From contig MCFH01000012.1 of the NCBI GenBank assembly GCA_002104945.1, positions 806,001 through 870,000 of the forward strand: a stretch of 64,000 nt of DNA. Reading direction: 5' to 3'. The position numbers were made by a program, and so were the translations under genes. Every line of letters begins with the position of its first letter. Position 1 is the stretch's first letter. The notes below the pieces were generated by a model. It searched no databases and was not told the DNA's origin. It was given only the letters and a program-made list of their open reading frames with translations. Of this stretch, positions 5,319 through 46,029 are shown piece after piece. Source of the stretch: Piromyces finnis finn. Its lineage: Eukaryota; Fungi; Neocallimastigomycota.

Positions 5319-5813
5319 TTTTAAATATTATATTGTTATTACTATTCTTTTTTAAGATTGAGTTTATTTCTATATATAGTATTAAAAAATATATATATTA
5401 AAACTATTGATGTTTTATTAATCTTTGCTTTTTTTTTTTTTTTTTGAAAATGAAAAAAACGAAAAAAAAAAAAACGAAAATAACGAAAATTTAATTTATA
5501 ATATATTAAAATTCAATTAAATTTTGATTTTCAATATATTTTTATATATGATCCAATATATTAATTTTAAAATGTTTTTTTCCCTTCATTTGTGGAAGAC
5601 TTTTTTTCTTTTATTTCTTTAAAAAGAATTGTCACTTTTTATTCTTTAAATGTTAAAAGAAAAAAGTATGTTTTATATCTTTTTGCGATTAGAATTAAAA
5701 TTTCATTTTATATTTCATCTTTATATTCATTCCCATTATAATTTATTATTTTTTTCATTAAAAAACTTTTATTTTTTGACACTTAATGTGACAATGTAAC
5801 TGGGAAAAACGAC

Positions 5814-31413: not shown

Positions 31414-32733
31414 ATGATGAAAGAAGGTTTTTCCGAAAATGATATGGCAACCCATATTATAAACTATATTTTTAATTATATTGATAATTTTGATACTTTT
31501 ACAAAGAATAATAAATATTACTGTTGTAATTATAATTTAAATAACGATGATAGTATAGAAAATAAGGAAGAACTCAAAAATATTTCTTTAATTTCAGATG
31601 TTATATCACAAAAACTTAATTTTCACACGAACGAAAATAAAGATAATAGATTTATAAAAGTTATGTATTACAAAGAACCTTCTTTAAAGTCATTTAAAGG
31701 ATCAAAATTTTTACTTAAAGGTATTTCAAAAAATAATGAGTTATTCATTGTATCCTCAAAGAGTTTTCCTGAACACTGCAAAAAAATAAATGATATGAAA
31801 GAATACTGTAATAAATTACATAATATGAAAGTGGATATAGAAAATATGAAAATAGATACCAAATCAAAGAGTATGAAAAAGGAAATAAAAATGAAAGAAG
31901 AAGAATTAAAAAAAAAAGATATCAAATTTGATGTTCATAAACTTGAACTTCAAGATATACATTACAATGACTTGGAGTATTTTGAAAACAAATTTATATA
32001 TAATGATAAAAAAAAAGAAAATAATAGAATCTTCTGTATTGTTTTAACCTCTAAAGATGGAAATATCCTTAATATTTCCGATTTCTTTTCCATAGTTAGC
32101 AGTAAGCAATTATATAAAGCAAAAGATGCTATTATTAAATTTAGTTTTTTAGACTTTGTTTTAGAAGAAGAAAACGATTTAAATTATTATTTACGATCAT
32201 TTTTTGAGGCTCACCGTTTCAAAGATCACTTCCTTTTCAGAATTAATTTTTATGGAGCAGAAAATTCTACTGAAAATGAAGATGAAATTAACAATATTGA
32301 AAAAGAAATAATAAGATATTTGAATGACTCTCAAAACCAGGATGGTTCAACTATCAAAAATGATTCTGTTTCAAAAGAAATGTCAAATAATAATGAAGAA
32401 GCCAATAGCAATATGAATGAATGCCAACAAAATTTAAACACTAATTTATATGAAGCGTTTTATGGCATTTCATCTAATGAATTAAATACCAACAATTTTA
32501 TTGCTGATAGTAATATTGGATATAACAATATAAATAATAATTATAATTTTAATAATATTGGATATAATAATATAAATAATAATTATAATTTTAATAATAT
32601 GGAATATAATAATGTAAATAATAATTATAATTTTAATAATATGGGATATAATAACAATCCATTAGATTTATTTCAATCGGATTATATTCAAAACTACCTC
32701 AATTTATATAATAATAGCAATAATTTTTATTAA
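31414..32733 (+). CDS. Intronless orphan protein (439 aa) with Asn/Tyr-rich repeated C-terminus
   Basis: 1320-nt uninterrupted ORF in ~80% AT DNA, far beyond chance length. A local decayed paralog exists. No family recognised. Confidence 0.75.
   Translation: MMKEGFSENDMATHIINYIFNYIDNFDTFTKNNKYYCCNYNLNNDDSIENKEELKNISLISDVISQKLNFHTNENKDNRFIKVMYYKEPSLKSFKGSKFLLKGISKNNELFIVSSKSFPEHCKKINDMKEYCNKLHNMKVDIENMKIDTKSKSMKKEIKMKEEELKKKDIKFDVHKLELQDIHYNDLEYFENKFIYNDKKKENNRIFCIVLTSKDGNILNISDFFSIVSSKQLYKAKDAIIKFSFLDFVLEEENDLNYYLRSFFEAHRFKDHFLFRINFYGAENSTENEDEINNIEKEIIRYLNDSQNQDGSTIKNDSVSKEMSNNNEEANSNMNECQQNLNTNLYEAFYGISSNELNTNNFIADSNIGYNNINNNYNFNNIGYNNINNNYNFNNMEYNNVNNNYNFNNMGYNNNPLDLFQSDYIQNYLNLYNNSNNFY
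32512..32655 (+). repeat. 42-bp coding tandem repeat (~3.4 units; N[IM][GE]YNN[IV]NNNYNFN)
   Basis: Unit starts at 32512, 32554, 32596 and 32638. Confidence 0.9.
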
Positions 32734-33442: not shown

Positions 33443-33542
33443 CTGCTAGAATATTTGATTATGATTTTTATTTTGATTAATTTTATTGATATTAGAATAT
33501 ATTACCAACCAGTATCATTATTCAATATTAAATTGATCTAAC

Positions 33543-33837
33543 ACATAACCCTACATTTCCAATTACAATTAAAGGGTTTACGTATTAGAATGTATATTAT
33601 TCACGTATACATTATATTTTTTTTAATTTAAATTTTAAAAATGTATACATTATTTTTTTAAATTTTTTTTATGCTTTTTTTCAATAGTTTTAATTAATAT
33701 TTTTAATTTATTATGAAATTATGATTAATTTTTTTTTTTTTGAAATTTGTTAATATTAAAATTTTAAATTTTTAAATTTTAAATCCAATCATGATCATTG
33801 AATTTTATCCAATAAATTATTGGTTCAATAGTCAACC

Positions 33838-33870
<33 letters not shown>

Positions 33871-33880
33871 AAAATCTTTG
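33543..33880. repeat. Direct repeat copy B (~330 bp), immediately upstream of NSR1
   Basis: Colinear with 26600-26935. Ends about 80 bp before the NSR1 ATG and contains ccaatc and ccaataaattattgg. Confidence 0.8.
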
Positions 33881-33956
33881 CAATTCAGCAAAAATTTAAA
33901 AAAAATCTATTAATAAAAATTTATATTTATTTTATTAAATAATAAAAATATCTAAA

Positions 33957-35260
33957 ATGTCTGTCGAAGAAGAAAAGATTGAAGAAGTAAATGTTTAAAA
34001 AAAAAAGAATTATAAATTAAACAAAGATTATTTGAAAAGAAAATTAAAAAAAAAAAAAAAAAATTAAGAAATAAAATCTTGATATGCTAACCAATTTTGT
34101 ATATATATATTTTTATATCATTAAAAATCAATATTTTAAATTTTAATCTTTAATAATAGAGTAAGTATTTAGATAAATAATAATTAATAAAAATAAAAAT
34201 CATTTCAAAATTAAAAAAAATATATATGAAGAAAAAGTATTTATAAAGAAATTTTCAATTTTTTATTGTATAAAAATAATTAGCTCAAGTCATGGACGTT
34301 GACGTTGAAAAGAAGGAAAAGAAGGAAAAGAAGAGTAAGAAGGAAAAGAAGGAAAAGAAGGAAAAGAAAGAAAAAAAGGAAAAGAAAGAAAAGAAGGATA
34401 AAAAGGATAAGAAGAGTAAGAAGGAAAAGAAAGAAAAGAAGGAAAAGAAGAGAAAGTTAGAAGAAGAAGAAGAAACTGAAGCTAAGAAGCAAAAGACTGA
34501 AGAAACTTCTGAAGAAACTACTGAAGAATCAGTTGAAGAAACTAAGGAAGAAACTCAAGAAGAAAGTACCCAAGAAGAAAGTACCCAAGAAGAATCCACT
34601 GAAGCTGCTAAGGAACCAGCTACTATTTTCGTTGGTAACCTTTCTTACAACATGACTGAAGATTGGTTAGCTGAAGAATTCGGTGTTGTTGGTGAAGTTG
34701 TTGGTGCTAGAATTATTACTGACAGAGAATCTGGTCGTTCTAAGGGTTACGGTTACGTTGATTTCGCTGATAAGGCTACTGCTGAAAAGGCTGTTAAGGA
34801 ATACAACGGTAAGGAACTCGATGGTCGTGAAGTTAGATTAGATTTCGCTAACTCTCCAAACAAGACCAGCAAGCCAAAGAAGAACTACGATAACAAGCCA
34901 AGAAGTGCTCCAAGTAAGACTGTTTTCATTGGTAACTTAAGTTGGAACACCACTGAACAAGCTTTATCTGATTTATTCAATGAATACGGTAATGTTGTTT
35001 CTATTCGTATTCCAACCGAAAAGGAAACTGGTAGAAAGAAGGGTTTCGGTTACGTTGAATTCGATGAAGTTGATGCCGCTACTAAGGCTCTTGAACTTTC
35101 TGGTACTGAAGTTGATGGTCGTGCTATTCGTTTAGATTACGCTCCAGAAAGAAACAACCAAGGTGGTAACGGTGGTAACCGCGGTAACAGTCGTGGTGGT
35201 AACAGATTCAGTCGTCCAGCTGCTCCAAAGCCACAAGGTCAAAAGATTACTTTTGATTAA
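33957..35260 (+). CDS. NSR1: Nucleolin-like protein Nsr1/Gar2 (two RRMs)
   Basis: KKE-repeat/acidic N-terminus; RRM1 (TIFVGNLSY...RSKGYGYVDF); RRM2 (TVFIGNLSW...KKGFGYVEF); G/R/N tail ending GQKITFD. Proposed exons 33957-33986, 34160 (1 nt) and 34284-35260. Confidence 0.92.
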
Positions 35261-35920
35261 GCAATTTAATTAATAGATATCTAGATAGAAATTATTTTTA
35301 TAATATAAGCTTTTTTTTGTTTACACATATCACTATTGATATATATCCAACACATAAAAGAATAATTATATAACAAAAATAATTATTAAGATCCTCAATT
35401 TTAAATATATTTTAGATATTTTATATTTAACAAAATTCATGCAACAGATAACCACATTTTTTTAATATTTAAAAAACCAATTATTTATTTATAAATTTAA
35501 ATAGTATATGATATATACTTGATCATCGTTTAATTTATTAATAGATTTTTATTATAAGTTTTTTTTTATATATAACTAAATCCATTATTAGAAGCAAAAA
35601 AAAAATGAAATATTTTTAAACCAAATATTTTATTAAATTCTAATAAAATAATATCATAAAATTTAAAAAAAAAATGCTTATAAAATGTGTAGGTGTGTGA
35701 TTAATTATAAAAGAAATTAAGTAGTAGCAATGTTTTAGTAAAAGATTTAGTAAAAGAATTTAAAGTTCATTTTTGTTAAAATGAGGTATAATCCTATAAA
35801 TTAAAAGCTTTCTTTAAGGAATAAAACTTGCAATCAAATTAAAAAGTAGATAGTACAAAAAACTTTAAAATTTTTCAAAAAATAAGATTTTTGAATTAAA
35901 GATCTTTACACTTTTACTAC

Positions 35921-43923: not shown

Positions 43924-46029
43924 CTTATATTTATATATTGCTTTTTTTTTATTTCTTTAAAAATATAAAAAGAATATTATATTGTTTTTGCTTTTATTAA
44001 ATTATATTTATTTTTTGGATTTATTCTTTTTCTTATCTTTTATTTTGGTTTTACTTTCTATCTTTAAATTTTAAATGTTTTTTTTTTTTACTGCTTTAAA
44101 ATTTTGTTTATTTTACATATGTTTTAAATCAGTTAAAATGCTTATTTTACATATTTTTCAATGACTTTTATCAATAAAAAGTTTTTATTATAATAAAATT
44201 TTACTGATAAACAGTTGATGTATACAATGTTGTCTATTAAAAAAAAAAGATTTACTTGATATTATATTAATATAAAAGTATTGTTTAACTATATATAATA
44301 AATATTAATAAATGAAATCTAAGTTGATTTTATATGTGTTCTTTTTTATTTTGATATATTTAAATATTAATATGTTGTAATTTATTTATTAAGAAATGTG
44401 TATTTTATTATATTAAATTATTTTAATATTTCTTTACTGAGTAATTTCAATTTATTGAGTTTTTTTTTTTTTTTACTAAGCAATCAAATATACGTTTCTT
44501 TTTTGAAATTGGAATTCAATAATATTTTATAGTTTTATTTCTTGTAAAAATAATTTTTAATTATTGTATTTTGAATATTAAAACTATAATATTAAAAGGT
44601 TAATACATTGTTAAAATATTGAGTTGATTGCGTTTATAGTAATTGGTGCAACAAATATATAAATTATTTTTAAAAATTTAAAGACAAGTTTAAAATGCAT
44701 TAGTTATTTTTTTTTTAAATATCAATAAATTAATAAATAGAAAATAGAAAATAGAATATAATAAATAATAAAAAAAATAATGTTTTAAATGGTGAAAATT
44801 AATCTTTATATAAAATTTTGAAATTCTTTTTTTTACTTATAAAATATTGATATTAATAATTATTGGTATTGAATAACAATCATTTATGTTGATAATAATA
44901 ATACAAGATTGTTATTATTAATAAATTGATTACAAATTTTTATCTTATATGTAAAATATATTATAGATATTATGATAGAAAGAAGGTTCAGATAAAAAGA
45001 TTAATTGTGAAATTCAATAAAAAAAATTGTTTCTTTAAATATGTAACAAGTTTTATTTGTTTAAATAATTGTTTTCCTTTTACATATGTATTTGAAAATA
45101 ATAAACATTCTGAATCATAGTTATGATTTATATATATAAATCTTTATTAAAAGCTTATTGCTTTTTTTAAATAACATTTCATTGTTTAATTTCTTATAAA
45201 AAAAATGAAATTACTTACACTTATTTAAACAAATTATTTTCTTTAATTCTTTTTTCTTTTTTTTTTTTTTAATTTCTGTTACTGAATATTTTAAAAGTAA
45301 CTTTTATTTAATTAACTAAACCTTGTTTTTTTTTGTTGTTGTTGTTGCTGCTGTTATTATTGTTTTTGTTGTTACTGTTGTTGAATTTTATGTAAAAGAA
45401 AAAAAAACAAGTTTAGAAGAAAAAAAAGAAAAAGAAAAAAAGAAAAAGAAAACAAGATAATATTATATTTCGTTATATTCTCTTTTTTTTTTTTTTTTTT
45501 CCTTTTTTTCTTTTTTTTCCTTTTCTTTTTTTTATTTATTTCTTTCTTTTGTTTAATAAATAAGCTATTTCCTTTAAATAAATGAAATAAAATTGAGATT
45601 TTAAAATAAAAGCAAGGAAAAAGAAAAAAAAAAAGAGCCGCTTCAATTTATCCCATATTAAAATTTAAAAATTCTGTTGATTTATTTATTTATGTATTTA
45701 TGTATCCATTCATTAATATAAGTTAACATATATTTATTTATTATTCATTCATTCATTTATTACTATTAGTTACTAACATATATTTATTTATTTATTATTT
45801 ATTTATTCATTTATTAATGTTCATTCATTTATTTGTTTGTTTGTTCATTTATTTATTTAAATTTTAATATGAAACTCTAAAATTTTAATTTTTTTTTAAT
45901 ATGAATATTATTATTTTTTATAAAATATTAATTATTAATATTATTTTAATATTTAATAATATTTATTAATATTATTATTTATTAATATTAAAATACTATT
46001 AATAAAACTATCATTATTTAATAAAACAA

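Follow-up and report, generated by a model that had tools for sequence, protein, structure and literature searches.

How does the coding sequence of the NSR1 gene begin in the anaerobic fungus Piromyces finnis, and how can a short upstream exon be joined to it when the two are out of phase? We addressed this question in a 64,000-nucleotide stretch of the P. finnis genome (assembly GCA_002104945.1, contig MCFH01000012.1, positions 806,001 to 870,000 of the forward strand), hereafter the window, in which position 1 is the first letter; all features of the gene lie on the + strand. The public annotation describes NSR1 as a single-exon coding sequence (CDS) of 322 amino acids that covers only 34292–35260, with its start at ATG 34292 and its stop codon at 35258–35260. 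Our analysis indicates that the P. finnis NSR1 mRNA probably carries one additional base, the A at 34160, as a one-nucleotide exon between two introns, and that translation would begin upstream, at ATG 33957.

The reading-frame arithmetic is simple. The coding part of exon 1 (33957–33986) is 30 nt long, encodes MSVEEEKIEE and ends in phase 0; its ATG (33957–33959) is preceded by aaa, which places an A at −3, and its G+C content is 33%, compared with roughly 10–13% in the surrounding sequence. The main exon (34284–35260) opens with eight nucleotides, CTCAAGTC (34284–34291), before ATG 34292 is reached. Exon 1 and these eight nucleotides add up to 38 nt, which leaves ATG 33957 out of frame with NSR1, and one more base brings it into frame, as the preliminary description of this locus had reasoned. 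When A34160 is included, the frame is restored (MSVEEEKIEETQVMDVDVEKK...) and a continuous open reading frame (ORF) of 335 amino acids results, consisting of MSVEEEKIEETQV followed by the annotated 322 residues. In this ORF the A is the first base of codon 11 (ACT, Thr), CTCAAGTC fills out codons 11–13 (T, Q, V), and the annotated start becomes Met14. The predicted mRNA junction is GATTGAAGAAACTCAAGTCATGG with the A and GATTGAAGAACTCAAGTCATGG without it, and the predicted tryptic peptide across the junction is IEETQVMDVDVEK.

The flanks of the single base are canonical on both sides (TAG-A-GTAAGT, 34157–34166). Intron 1 (33987–34159, 173 nt) has its own full set of signals: the donor GTAAAT (33987–33992), the branch-site consensus TGCTAAC (34085–34091) and the acceptor TAG (34157–34159), which supplies the first AG past the branch site, no AG occurring from 34092 up to that point. 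Intron 2 (34161–34283, 123 nt) starts with the perfect donor GTAAGT (34161–34166) and ends in TTAG (TAG at 34281–34283). Each of these elements, from exon 1 to ATG 34292, was found at the position first reported for it. The donor at 34161 has the lowest upstream G+C content (7%) of all 21 GTAAGT sites in the window, and a G+C content this low argues that no conventional exon precedes it.

Evidence for the assignment comes from a transcript contig of a related species (L002; JGI sample 3300030541, Ga0265590_109948, 1414 nt), which encodes the 311-amino-acid protein P0170, the other member of the 90% cluster that contains a partial Piromyces sp. E2 protein. The coding part of L002 is 93.6% identical to the window and 94% identical to the E2 CDS, and judged by its sequence the contig represents the spliced, mRNA-like form of the ortholog in a third Piromyces-like species. 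Its first 90 nucleotides correspond to 33898–33986, nucleotide 91 is one A, and nucleotide 92 onward corresponds to 34284 onward. Both introns are absent from L002, removed precisely at the GT and AG boundaries named above, so that the junction reads ...GATTGAAGAA-A-CTCAAGTCATGG... (in wider context, ...ctaaaATGTCTGTCGAAGAAGAAAAGATTGAAGAA-A-CTCAAGTCATGGACG...). P0170 begins MSVEEEKIEETQVMDVDVDVKKEKK, and the start of its ORF, MSVEEEKIEETQVMDVDV, is the product predicted for inclusion of the A (MSVEEEKIEE-TQV-MDVDV).

The extra A of L002 matches A34160 in AG-A-GTAAGT, and it differs from both genomic bases that adjoin the junction, which are G at 33987 and G at 34283; the base before CTCAAG is G in the E2 genome as well. 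Because the adjoining genomic bases are G, the A does not come from a shifted single splice site. In the congener's transcript a single base therefore stands between two exon junctions and is contiguous with neither flank. Two related schemes were rejected on the same evidence: a non-canonical splice that retains G33987 would give the codon GCT, whereas ACT is observed, and a zero-length recursive splice site is contradicted by the one A that separates AG from GT and appears in L002.

Exon 1 is identical to L002 61–90 at 30 of 30 nucleotides, up to the last base before the GT, and exon 1, the A and CTCAAGTC, 39 nt in all, show zero differences between L002 and the window, against about 20% plus insertions and deletions in the leader and 6.4% in the CDS. 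Since it shows no differences where the leader shows about 20%, this stretch evolves like coding sequence, including the eight nucleotides that are annotated as untranslated.

The arrangement is conserved in Piromyces sp. E2 (locus L001, KZ150846.1), the sole other genome compared. E2 keeps both AAAAAG-A-GTAAGTAT and TAG-CTCAAGTCATGG, with AAG-A-GTAAGT at 5486–5494 of the locus; a T-rich tract leads up to the AAG that adjoins the A. Intron 2 is 159 nt long in E2 and 123 nt in P. finnis, with the same GTAAGTAT start and the same TAG end, and in E2 it contains ATTAAC followed by a T-run; overall the two introns align at only 59%, near the level of any two A+T-rich sequences. By a base-composition calculation, AGNGTAAGT would occur by chance in the E2 sequence visible there (192 bases) with a probability of about 0.002. 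The preliminary description had proposed a search for AG-N-GTAAGT in orthologues as a check on its central claim, that splicing retains A34160 to link exon 1 with the main exon. Both came out in its favor: the motif is kept in E2, and the congener's transcript has the A.

Within the window, AGNGTAAGT by itself is not special, as five copies are present versus 0.92 expected, and three of the four copies elsewhere are ordinary donors that close G+C-richer exons. The fourth, AG-T-GTAAGT at 45213–45221 on the − strand, lies in A+T-rich sequence and follows a CAA/CAG-rich stretch, about 1.3 kb upstream of the start codon (43923) of a kinesin-3 gene. It was considered as a second one-base exon and rejected, since it looks like an ordinary donor, and is probably that of an intron in the 5′ untranslated region (5′UTR) of the kinesin gene.

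Gene structures that would do without A34160 were enumerated. No single intron whose acceptor precedes ATG 34292 was found to keep the frame. Downstream of this ATG there are in-frame single-intron solutions; all of them use AAG acceptors at 34313–34352 within the Lys/Glu-coding repeat (AAGGAAAAG)n, which includes 34336–34407 (+), all would delete MDVDVEK, and all are contradicted by L002. The earlier description, in which the alternative phase-0 acceptors that had been checked ran into stops, needs correction in this respect. The other two-intron solution, with a 19-nt exon at 34249–34267 and the weak donor GTATAA, contradicts L002 and is absent from E2. Among the short-exon solutions enumerated, A34160 alone fits the transcript contig. 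An intron-hosted RNA or a special structure was ruled out on two grounds: no Rfam match was found in 33500–34335, and the predicted fold of 33957–34300 is no better than that of shuffled sequences (z = +0.77).

The consequence of leaving the A out can be read from the sequence. Skipping opens a 68-codon Arg/Lys-rich frame, MSVEEEKIEELKSWTLTLKRRKRR...RRES and a stop, which overlaps the NSR1 start; its Arg/Lys-rich character was described correctly at the outset, and its end, placed near 34400, is in fact at 34460. Most of this frame falls in 34299–34460 (+), where the +1 frame of the Lys/Glu repeat is open for 53 codons (RRKRRKRR...) and is entered on skipping of the A; this open frame arises as a by-product of the repeat, (AAGGAAAAG)n. 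The 5′ untranslated leader extends at least over 33898–33956 (+), to which L002 1–60 aligns at about 80% identity, and neither leader contains an ATG. The known leader thus offers no AUG before that at 33957. This first AUG has a good context, and without the A its frame would differ from that of NSR1.

The gene is identified as NSR1, as first proposed, by homology and domain content. Homologs of the 34292–35260 ORF include Nsr1p of S. cerevisiae and other yeasts, Schizosaccharomyces Gar2 and entries named 'nuclear localization sequence binding protein', at 45–53% identity, and these homologs carry precomputed RRM_1 (PF00076) assignments. In the P. finnis protein, an acidic N-terminal region rich in Lys and Glu precedes two RRM domains; the RGG-like Gly/Arg tail is short (GGNGGNRGNSRGGNR), and the C-terminal KITFD agrees with the ...KKTFD/KITFD ends of fungal homologs. 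With all class features present in its predicted sequence (the N-terminal region, two RRM domains and the Gly/Arg tail), it is an NSR1/Gar2/nucleolin-like protein. The deposited 322-residue model has no Pfam match on record. It was also missing from the matches of both protein searches, although it fits their length range; only three Neocallimastigomycota clusters were among those matches, and the E2 NSR1 model is partial. Search queries included window 34610–35257, 34287–34308, 33500–34335 and 31414–32730, and residues 1–30 of P0170.

The deposited P. finnis model is very probably 13 residues short at its N-terminus, the public annotation having missed the one-base exon. That gene predictors would overlook such an exon had been anticipated, and the deposited CDS does begin at ATG 34292. 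A start at Met14 is the expected fallback, because the pipeline cannot represent a 1-nt exon.

Several observations weigh against inclusion of A34160 in the P. finnis mRNA. Support for the junction comes from one transcript contig, from a congener without an available genome, and in that species the A could in principle be part of a 31-nt exon 1. Exon 1 of E2 and most of its intron 1 fall within an assembly gap of 1196 N. Intron 2 of P. finnis has no clear CTRAY branch motif in the window; its best branch candidate would be TTTAT, a degenerate yUnAy located about 17 nt upstream of the AG. An exhaustive HMMER search of a representative library with P0170 residues 1–30 gave 0 matches. A scan of metagenome contigs with the start of exon 2 (AAGTCATGGACGTTGACGTTGA) returned only two G+C-rich bacterial chance matches, in a collection that lacks L002 and is uninformative on transcript frequency. 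In favor of splicing, four P. finnis sequencing runs (X1–X4, their RNA type being a guess) contain 0.55–0.71 of the sampled 31-mers of 33800–35300. The share predicted is 0.71 for spliced mRNA with exon 1 from 33898, 0.67 for mRNA without exon 1 and 0.93 for unspliced RNA; the observed values fit removal of 33987–34283 and do not separate exon 1-containing (0.71) from exon 2-only (0.67) mRNA.

Three rival explanations were weighed against this background. The first takes the public annotation as right: the protein would start at ATG 34292, all sequence upstream would be 5′UTR with one or two introns, and ATG 33957 would be the start of an upstream ORF in another frame. Skipping of the A would make this the 68-codon Arg/Lys-rich frame, and unspliced RNA would give MSVEEEKIEEVNV and a stop. 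The deposited single-exon model of 322 amino acids is itself a point in its favor, ATG 34292 has a G at −3 and a G at +4, and MDVDVEKKEKK is plausible as an N-terminus. We nevertheless regard this explanation as unlikely. In the congener's mRNA the extra A puts exon 1 in frame with the main exon; the conservation of exon 1 and CTCAAGTC is that of coding sequence and not that of the leader; and AG-A-GTAAGT is kept in E2. An overlapping, out-of-frame first AUG would moreover repress a housekeeping gene that is expected to be highly expressed. The fallback to Met14 is an expected pipeline artefact, and the same happened to the Fusarium CYP621A genes (PMC12940212).

The second explanation is that the species differ. 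The L002 species would have the A within a 31-nt exon 1 followed by one ordinary intron, and P. finnis would have lost both the base and the use of the in-frame upstream AUG. The gap over E2 exon 1 and the lack of a genome for the L002 species leave room for such a difference. It is highly unlikely all the same: exon 1 is identical in L002 and the window to its last base before the GT, and the presence of AG-A-GTAAGT in both genomes, within a diverged intron of 5–7% G+C, would be left unexplained. The third ascribes the extra A, seen in this one contig from one sample, to faulty assembly or sequencing or to a rare isoform, normal mRNA lacking it. It is barely credible: a random insertion would have to hit the exon junction, coincide with the base that two genomes have between AG and GTAAGT, and put the first AUG back in frame, in a contig that is otherwise collinear with the gene over 1.4 kb, introns aside.

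If A34160 is indeed a one-base exon, its splicing may be pictured as follows. Transcription would start at or upstream of 33898, and the first AUG, at 33957, would open the frame. After ten codons exon 1 would give way to the donor GTAAAT, intron 1 would be removed through TGCTAAC and the first AG downstream of it with A34160 retained, and intron 2 would start immediately afterward at GTAAGT and end at the TAG at 34283. The mature mRNA would then read GAAGAA-A-CTCAAGTCATG and encode the 335-residue protein. The acceptor of intron 1 would overlap the range over which U1 snRNP contacts the donor of intron 2 (−3 to +6), and a single-base 3′ exon could presumably not also be held as an ordinary exon. 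Introns 1 and 2 would therefore not be engaged together at A34160 and would be removed one after the other. Such sequential removal is suggested by the layout of the signals, and either order may apply. Removal of intron 1 first would change AGA-GTAAGT to AAA-GTAAGT, slightly nearer to the MAG-GTRAGT consensus, in a manner akin to a recursive-splicing 'ratchet' site that keeps one base. Removal of intron 2 first would turn the acceptor into TAG-ACTCAAG and would be just as possible as far as the sequence shows.

Recursive splicing at zero-length exons uses AG-GTAAGT ratchet sites, occurs in long Drosophila introns and leaves no nucleotide in the mRNA. The NSR1 site resembles these sites in that an acceptor stands against a strong donor and removal of the upstream intron would regenerate a 5′ splice site; it differs in that one coding base is kept and that both introns are short (173 and 123 nt). 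By this analogy, a ratchet-like second step is a likely way for the NSR1 site to work. Fungal stwintrons (PMC5639578) are similar in requiring two consecutive splicing reactions at overlapping signals. In a stwintron, the donor, branch or acceptor element of an outer intron is split by an intron nested within it, and no part of the unit stays in the mRNA. This reading was rejected for NSR1, whose two donors (GTAAAT and GTAAGT) and two acceptors are all intact and whose introns leave a base between them.

The cell might also vary how often A34160 is included, for example if the branch site of intron 1 competed with a direct splice from 33987 to 34283; skipping would then lead into the 68-codon frame and silence NSR1 translation. 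We consider such regulation, an on/off frame switch of the kind suggested in the preliminary description, unlikely. If true, splicing of a single nucleotide would be a regulated switch on ribosome biogenesis.

One-base exons have precedents. Guo and Liu reportedly described in 2015 a single-nucleotide exon in Arabidopsis APC11, located between canonical spliceosomal introns and needed for the frame. APC11 and NSR1 thus share a frame-required exon of 1 nt, and APC11 is a plant gene. A close parallel is the CYP621A P450 family of Fusarium, in which a one-nucleotide exon (AG-G-GT) is present in 20–24 orthologs and in SRA reads; it was described as the second one-nucleotide exon overall and the first in fungi, with APC11 cited as the only earlier case (PMC12940212). 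As in NSR1, a fungal nuclear gene has one base between AG and GT that reconciles out-of-phase exons, is conserved, has transcript support and was missed by the deposited models.

The two cases also differ in several respects. Fusarium belongs to the Ascomycota, and NSR1 extends the comparison to the early-diverging anaerobic Neocallimastigomycota. The CYP621A base lies in a conserved motif of the catalytic fold (PKG) in the middle of the CDS, whereas the NSR1 base lies at codon 11, after a short N-terminal exon; at that position an internal methionine therefore gives gene predictors an easy fallback. CYP621A is rarely expressed, whereas high expression is assumed for NSR1 as a ribosome-biogenesis gene. 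Support for CYP621A comprises 20–24 orthologs and SRA reads, and that for NSR1 two genomes and one transcript contig.

A long-read annotation of Coprinopsis cinerea lists 13 one-nucleotide exons in 13 genes (PMC12230235). It likewise demonstrates that such exons recur in fungal genomes and that their omission breaks gene models, and it differs in being a basidiomycete catalogue in which no NSR1 case is described (PMC12230235). The remark in the preliminary description that one-nucleotide exons are very rarely reported therefore stands as to their rarity, although they are no longer unprecedented, even in fungi (PMC12940212, PMC12230235). Our literature search found no report of a one-nucleotide exon for Neocallimastigomycota or for any NSR1/nucleolin gene, and no Neocallimastigomycota catalogue.

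Additional features were recorded around the gene. The 3′ untranslated region extends at least over 35261–35649 (+); L002 997–1414 (418 nt) aligns to 35264–35649 at about 71% identity. Across the window, G+C content is 10–15% between genes and 32–45% in coding parts. Upstream of the leader are two CCAAT boxes (33785–33789 and 33809–33813) and an inverted ATTGG (33819–33823), the second box and the ATTGG forming the near-palindrome CCAATAAATTATTGG. This cluster is followed by a T-run and an A-run and lies about 75–110 nt upstream of the minimum mRNA 5′ end, which makes the region a candidate promoter; its E2 counterpart falls in the assembly gap. Between NSR1 and its conserved neighbor Nup88, the exons of which encode 145 amino acids or less, P. 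finnis has a 439-amino-acid Asn-rich ORF without a Pfam match (31414–32733, +). In E2 the end of Nup88 is about 1.6 kb from NSR1 exon 2, with the 1196-N gap between them, and the ORF region may be a lineage-specific insertion.

Loci from two further genera were considered for comparison of the 5′ end and set aside. In Neocallimastix (L004 4094–5574 and L005 3001–4980, from N. lanati and N. sp. 'constans'; proteins P0003 and P0172–P0176), a MIF4G-domain gene joins the C-terminal half of an NSR1 copy, namely the second half of RRM1, RRM2 and the tail, with no intron at the joint (...KTIAEIHKENEKAVKEYNGKELDGREV...) and without the 5′ arrangement. This chimera occurs in three genomes and in ENA/JGI contigs, and it looks like a real fused partial duplicate, not a prediction error; a true NSR1 ortholog of Neocallimastix was not found in the protein searches. 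The Pecoramyces-like contig (L003, Logan SRR8491975) is genomic, stops inside an intron of RRM1 and lacks the 5′ end. That intron (L003 1–180), which is absent from P. finnis, has a branch-like TACTAAT and the acceptor AATAG-TTATGGTTACG, and the public Pecoramyces NSR1 model starts inside it (MKKKLFNYIINNS...).

Taken together, the NSR1 case adds an early-diverging phylum, the Neocallimastigomycota, and a housekeeping ribosome-biogenesis gene to the known one-nucleotide exons. It also lies where annotation pipelines can fall back on an internal methionine, so that the problem stays hidden. The case illustrates that out-of-phase 'upstream ORFs' beside 5′ introns in such genomes can be mis-annotated coding exons. 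A search rule for re-annotation follows from the locus, namely a branch site, the first AG, one base and GTAAGT, located between exons of incompatible phase. With its two short introns, strong branch site and perfect GTAAGT, the locus is a compact natural substrate for asking how an intron-definition spliceosome copes with a single base between acceptor and donor. Back-to-back introns separated by exons of 0–1 nt might be a recurring device in this genome, which is extremely rich in A+T.

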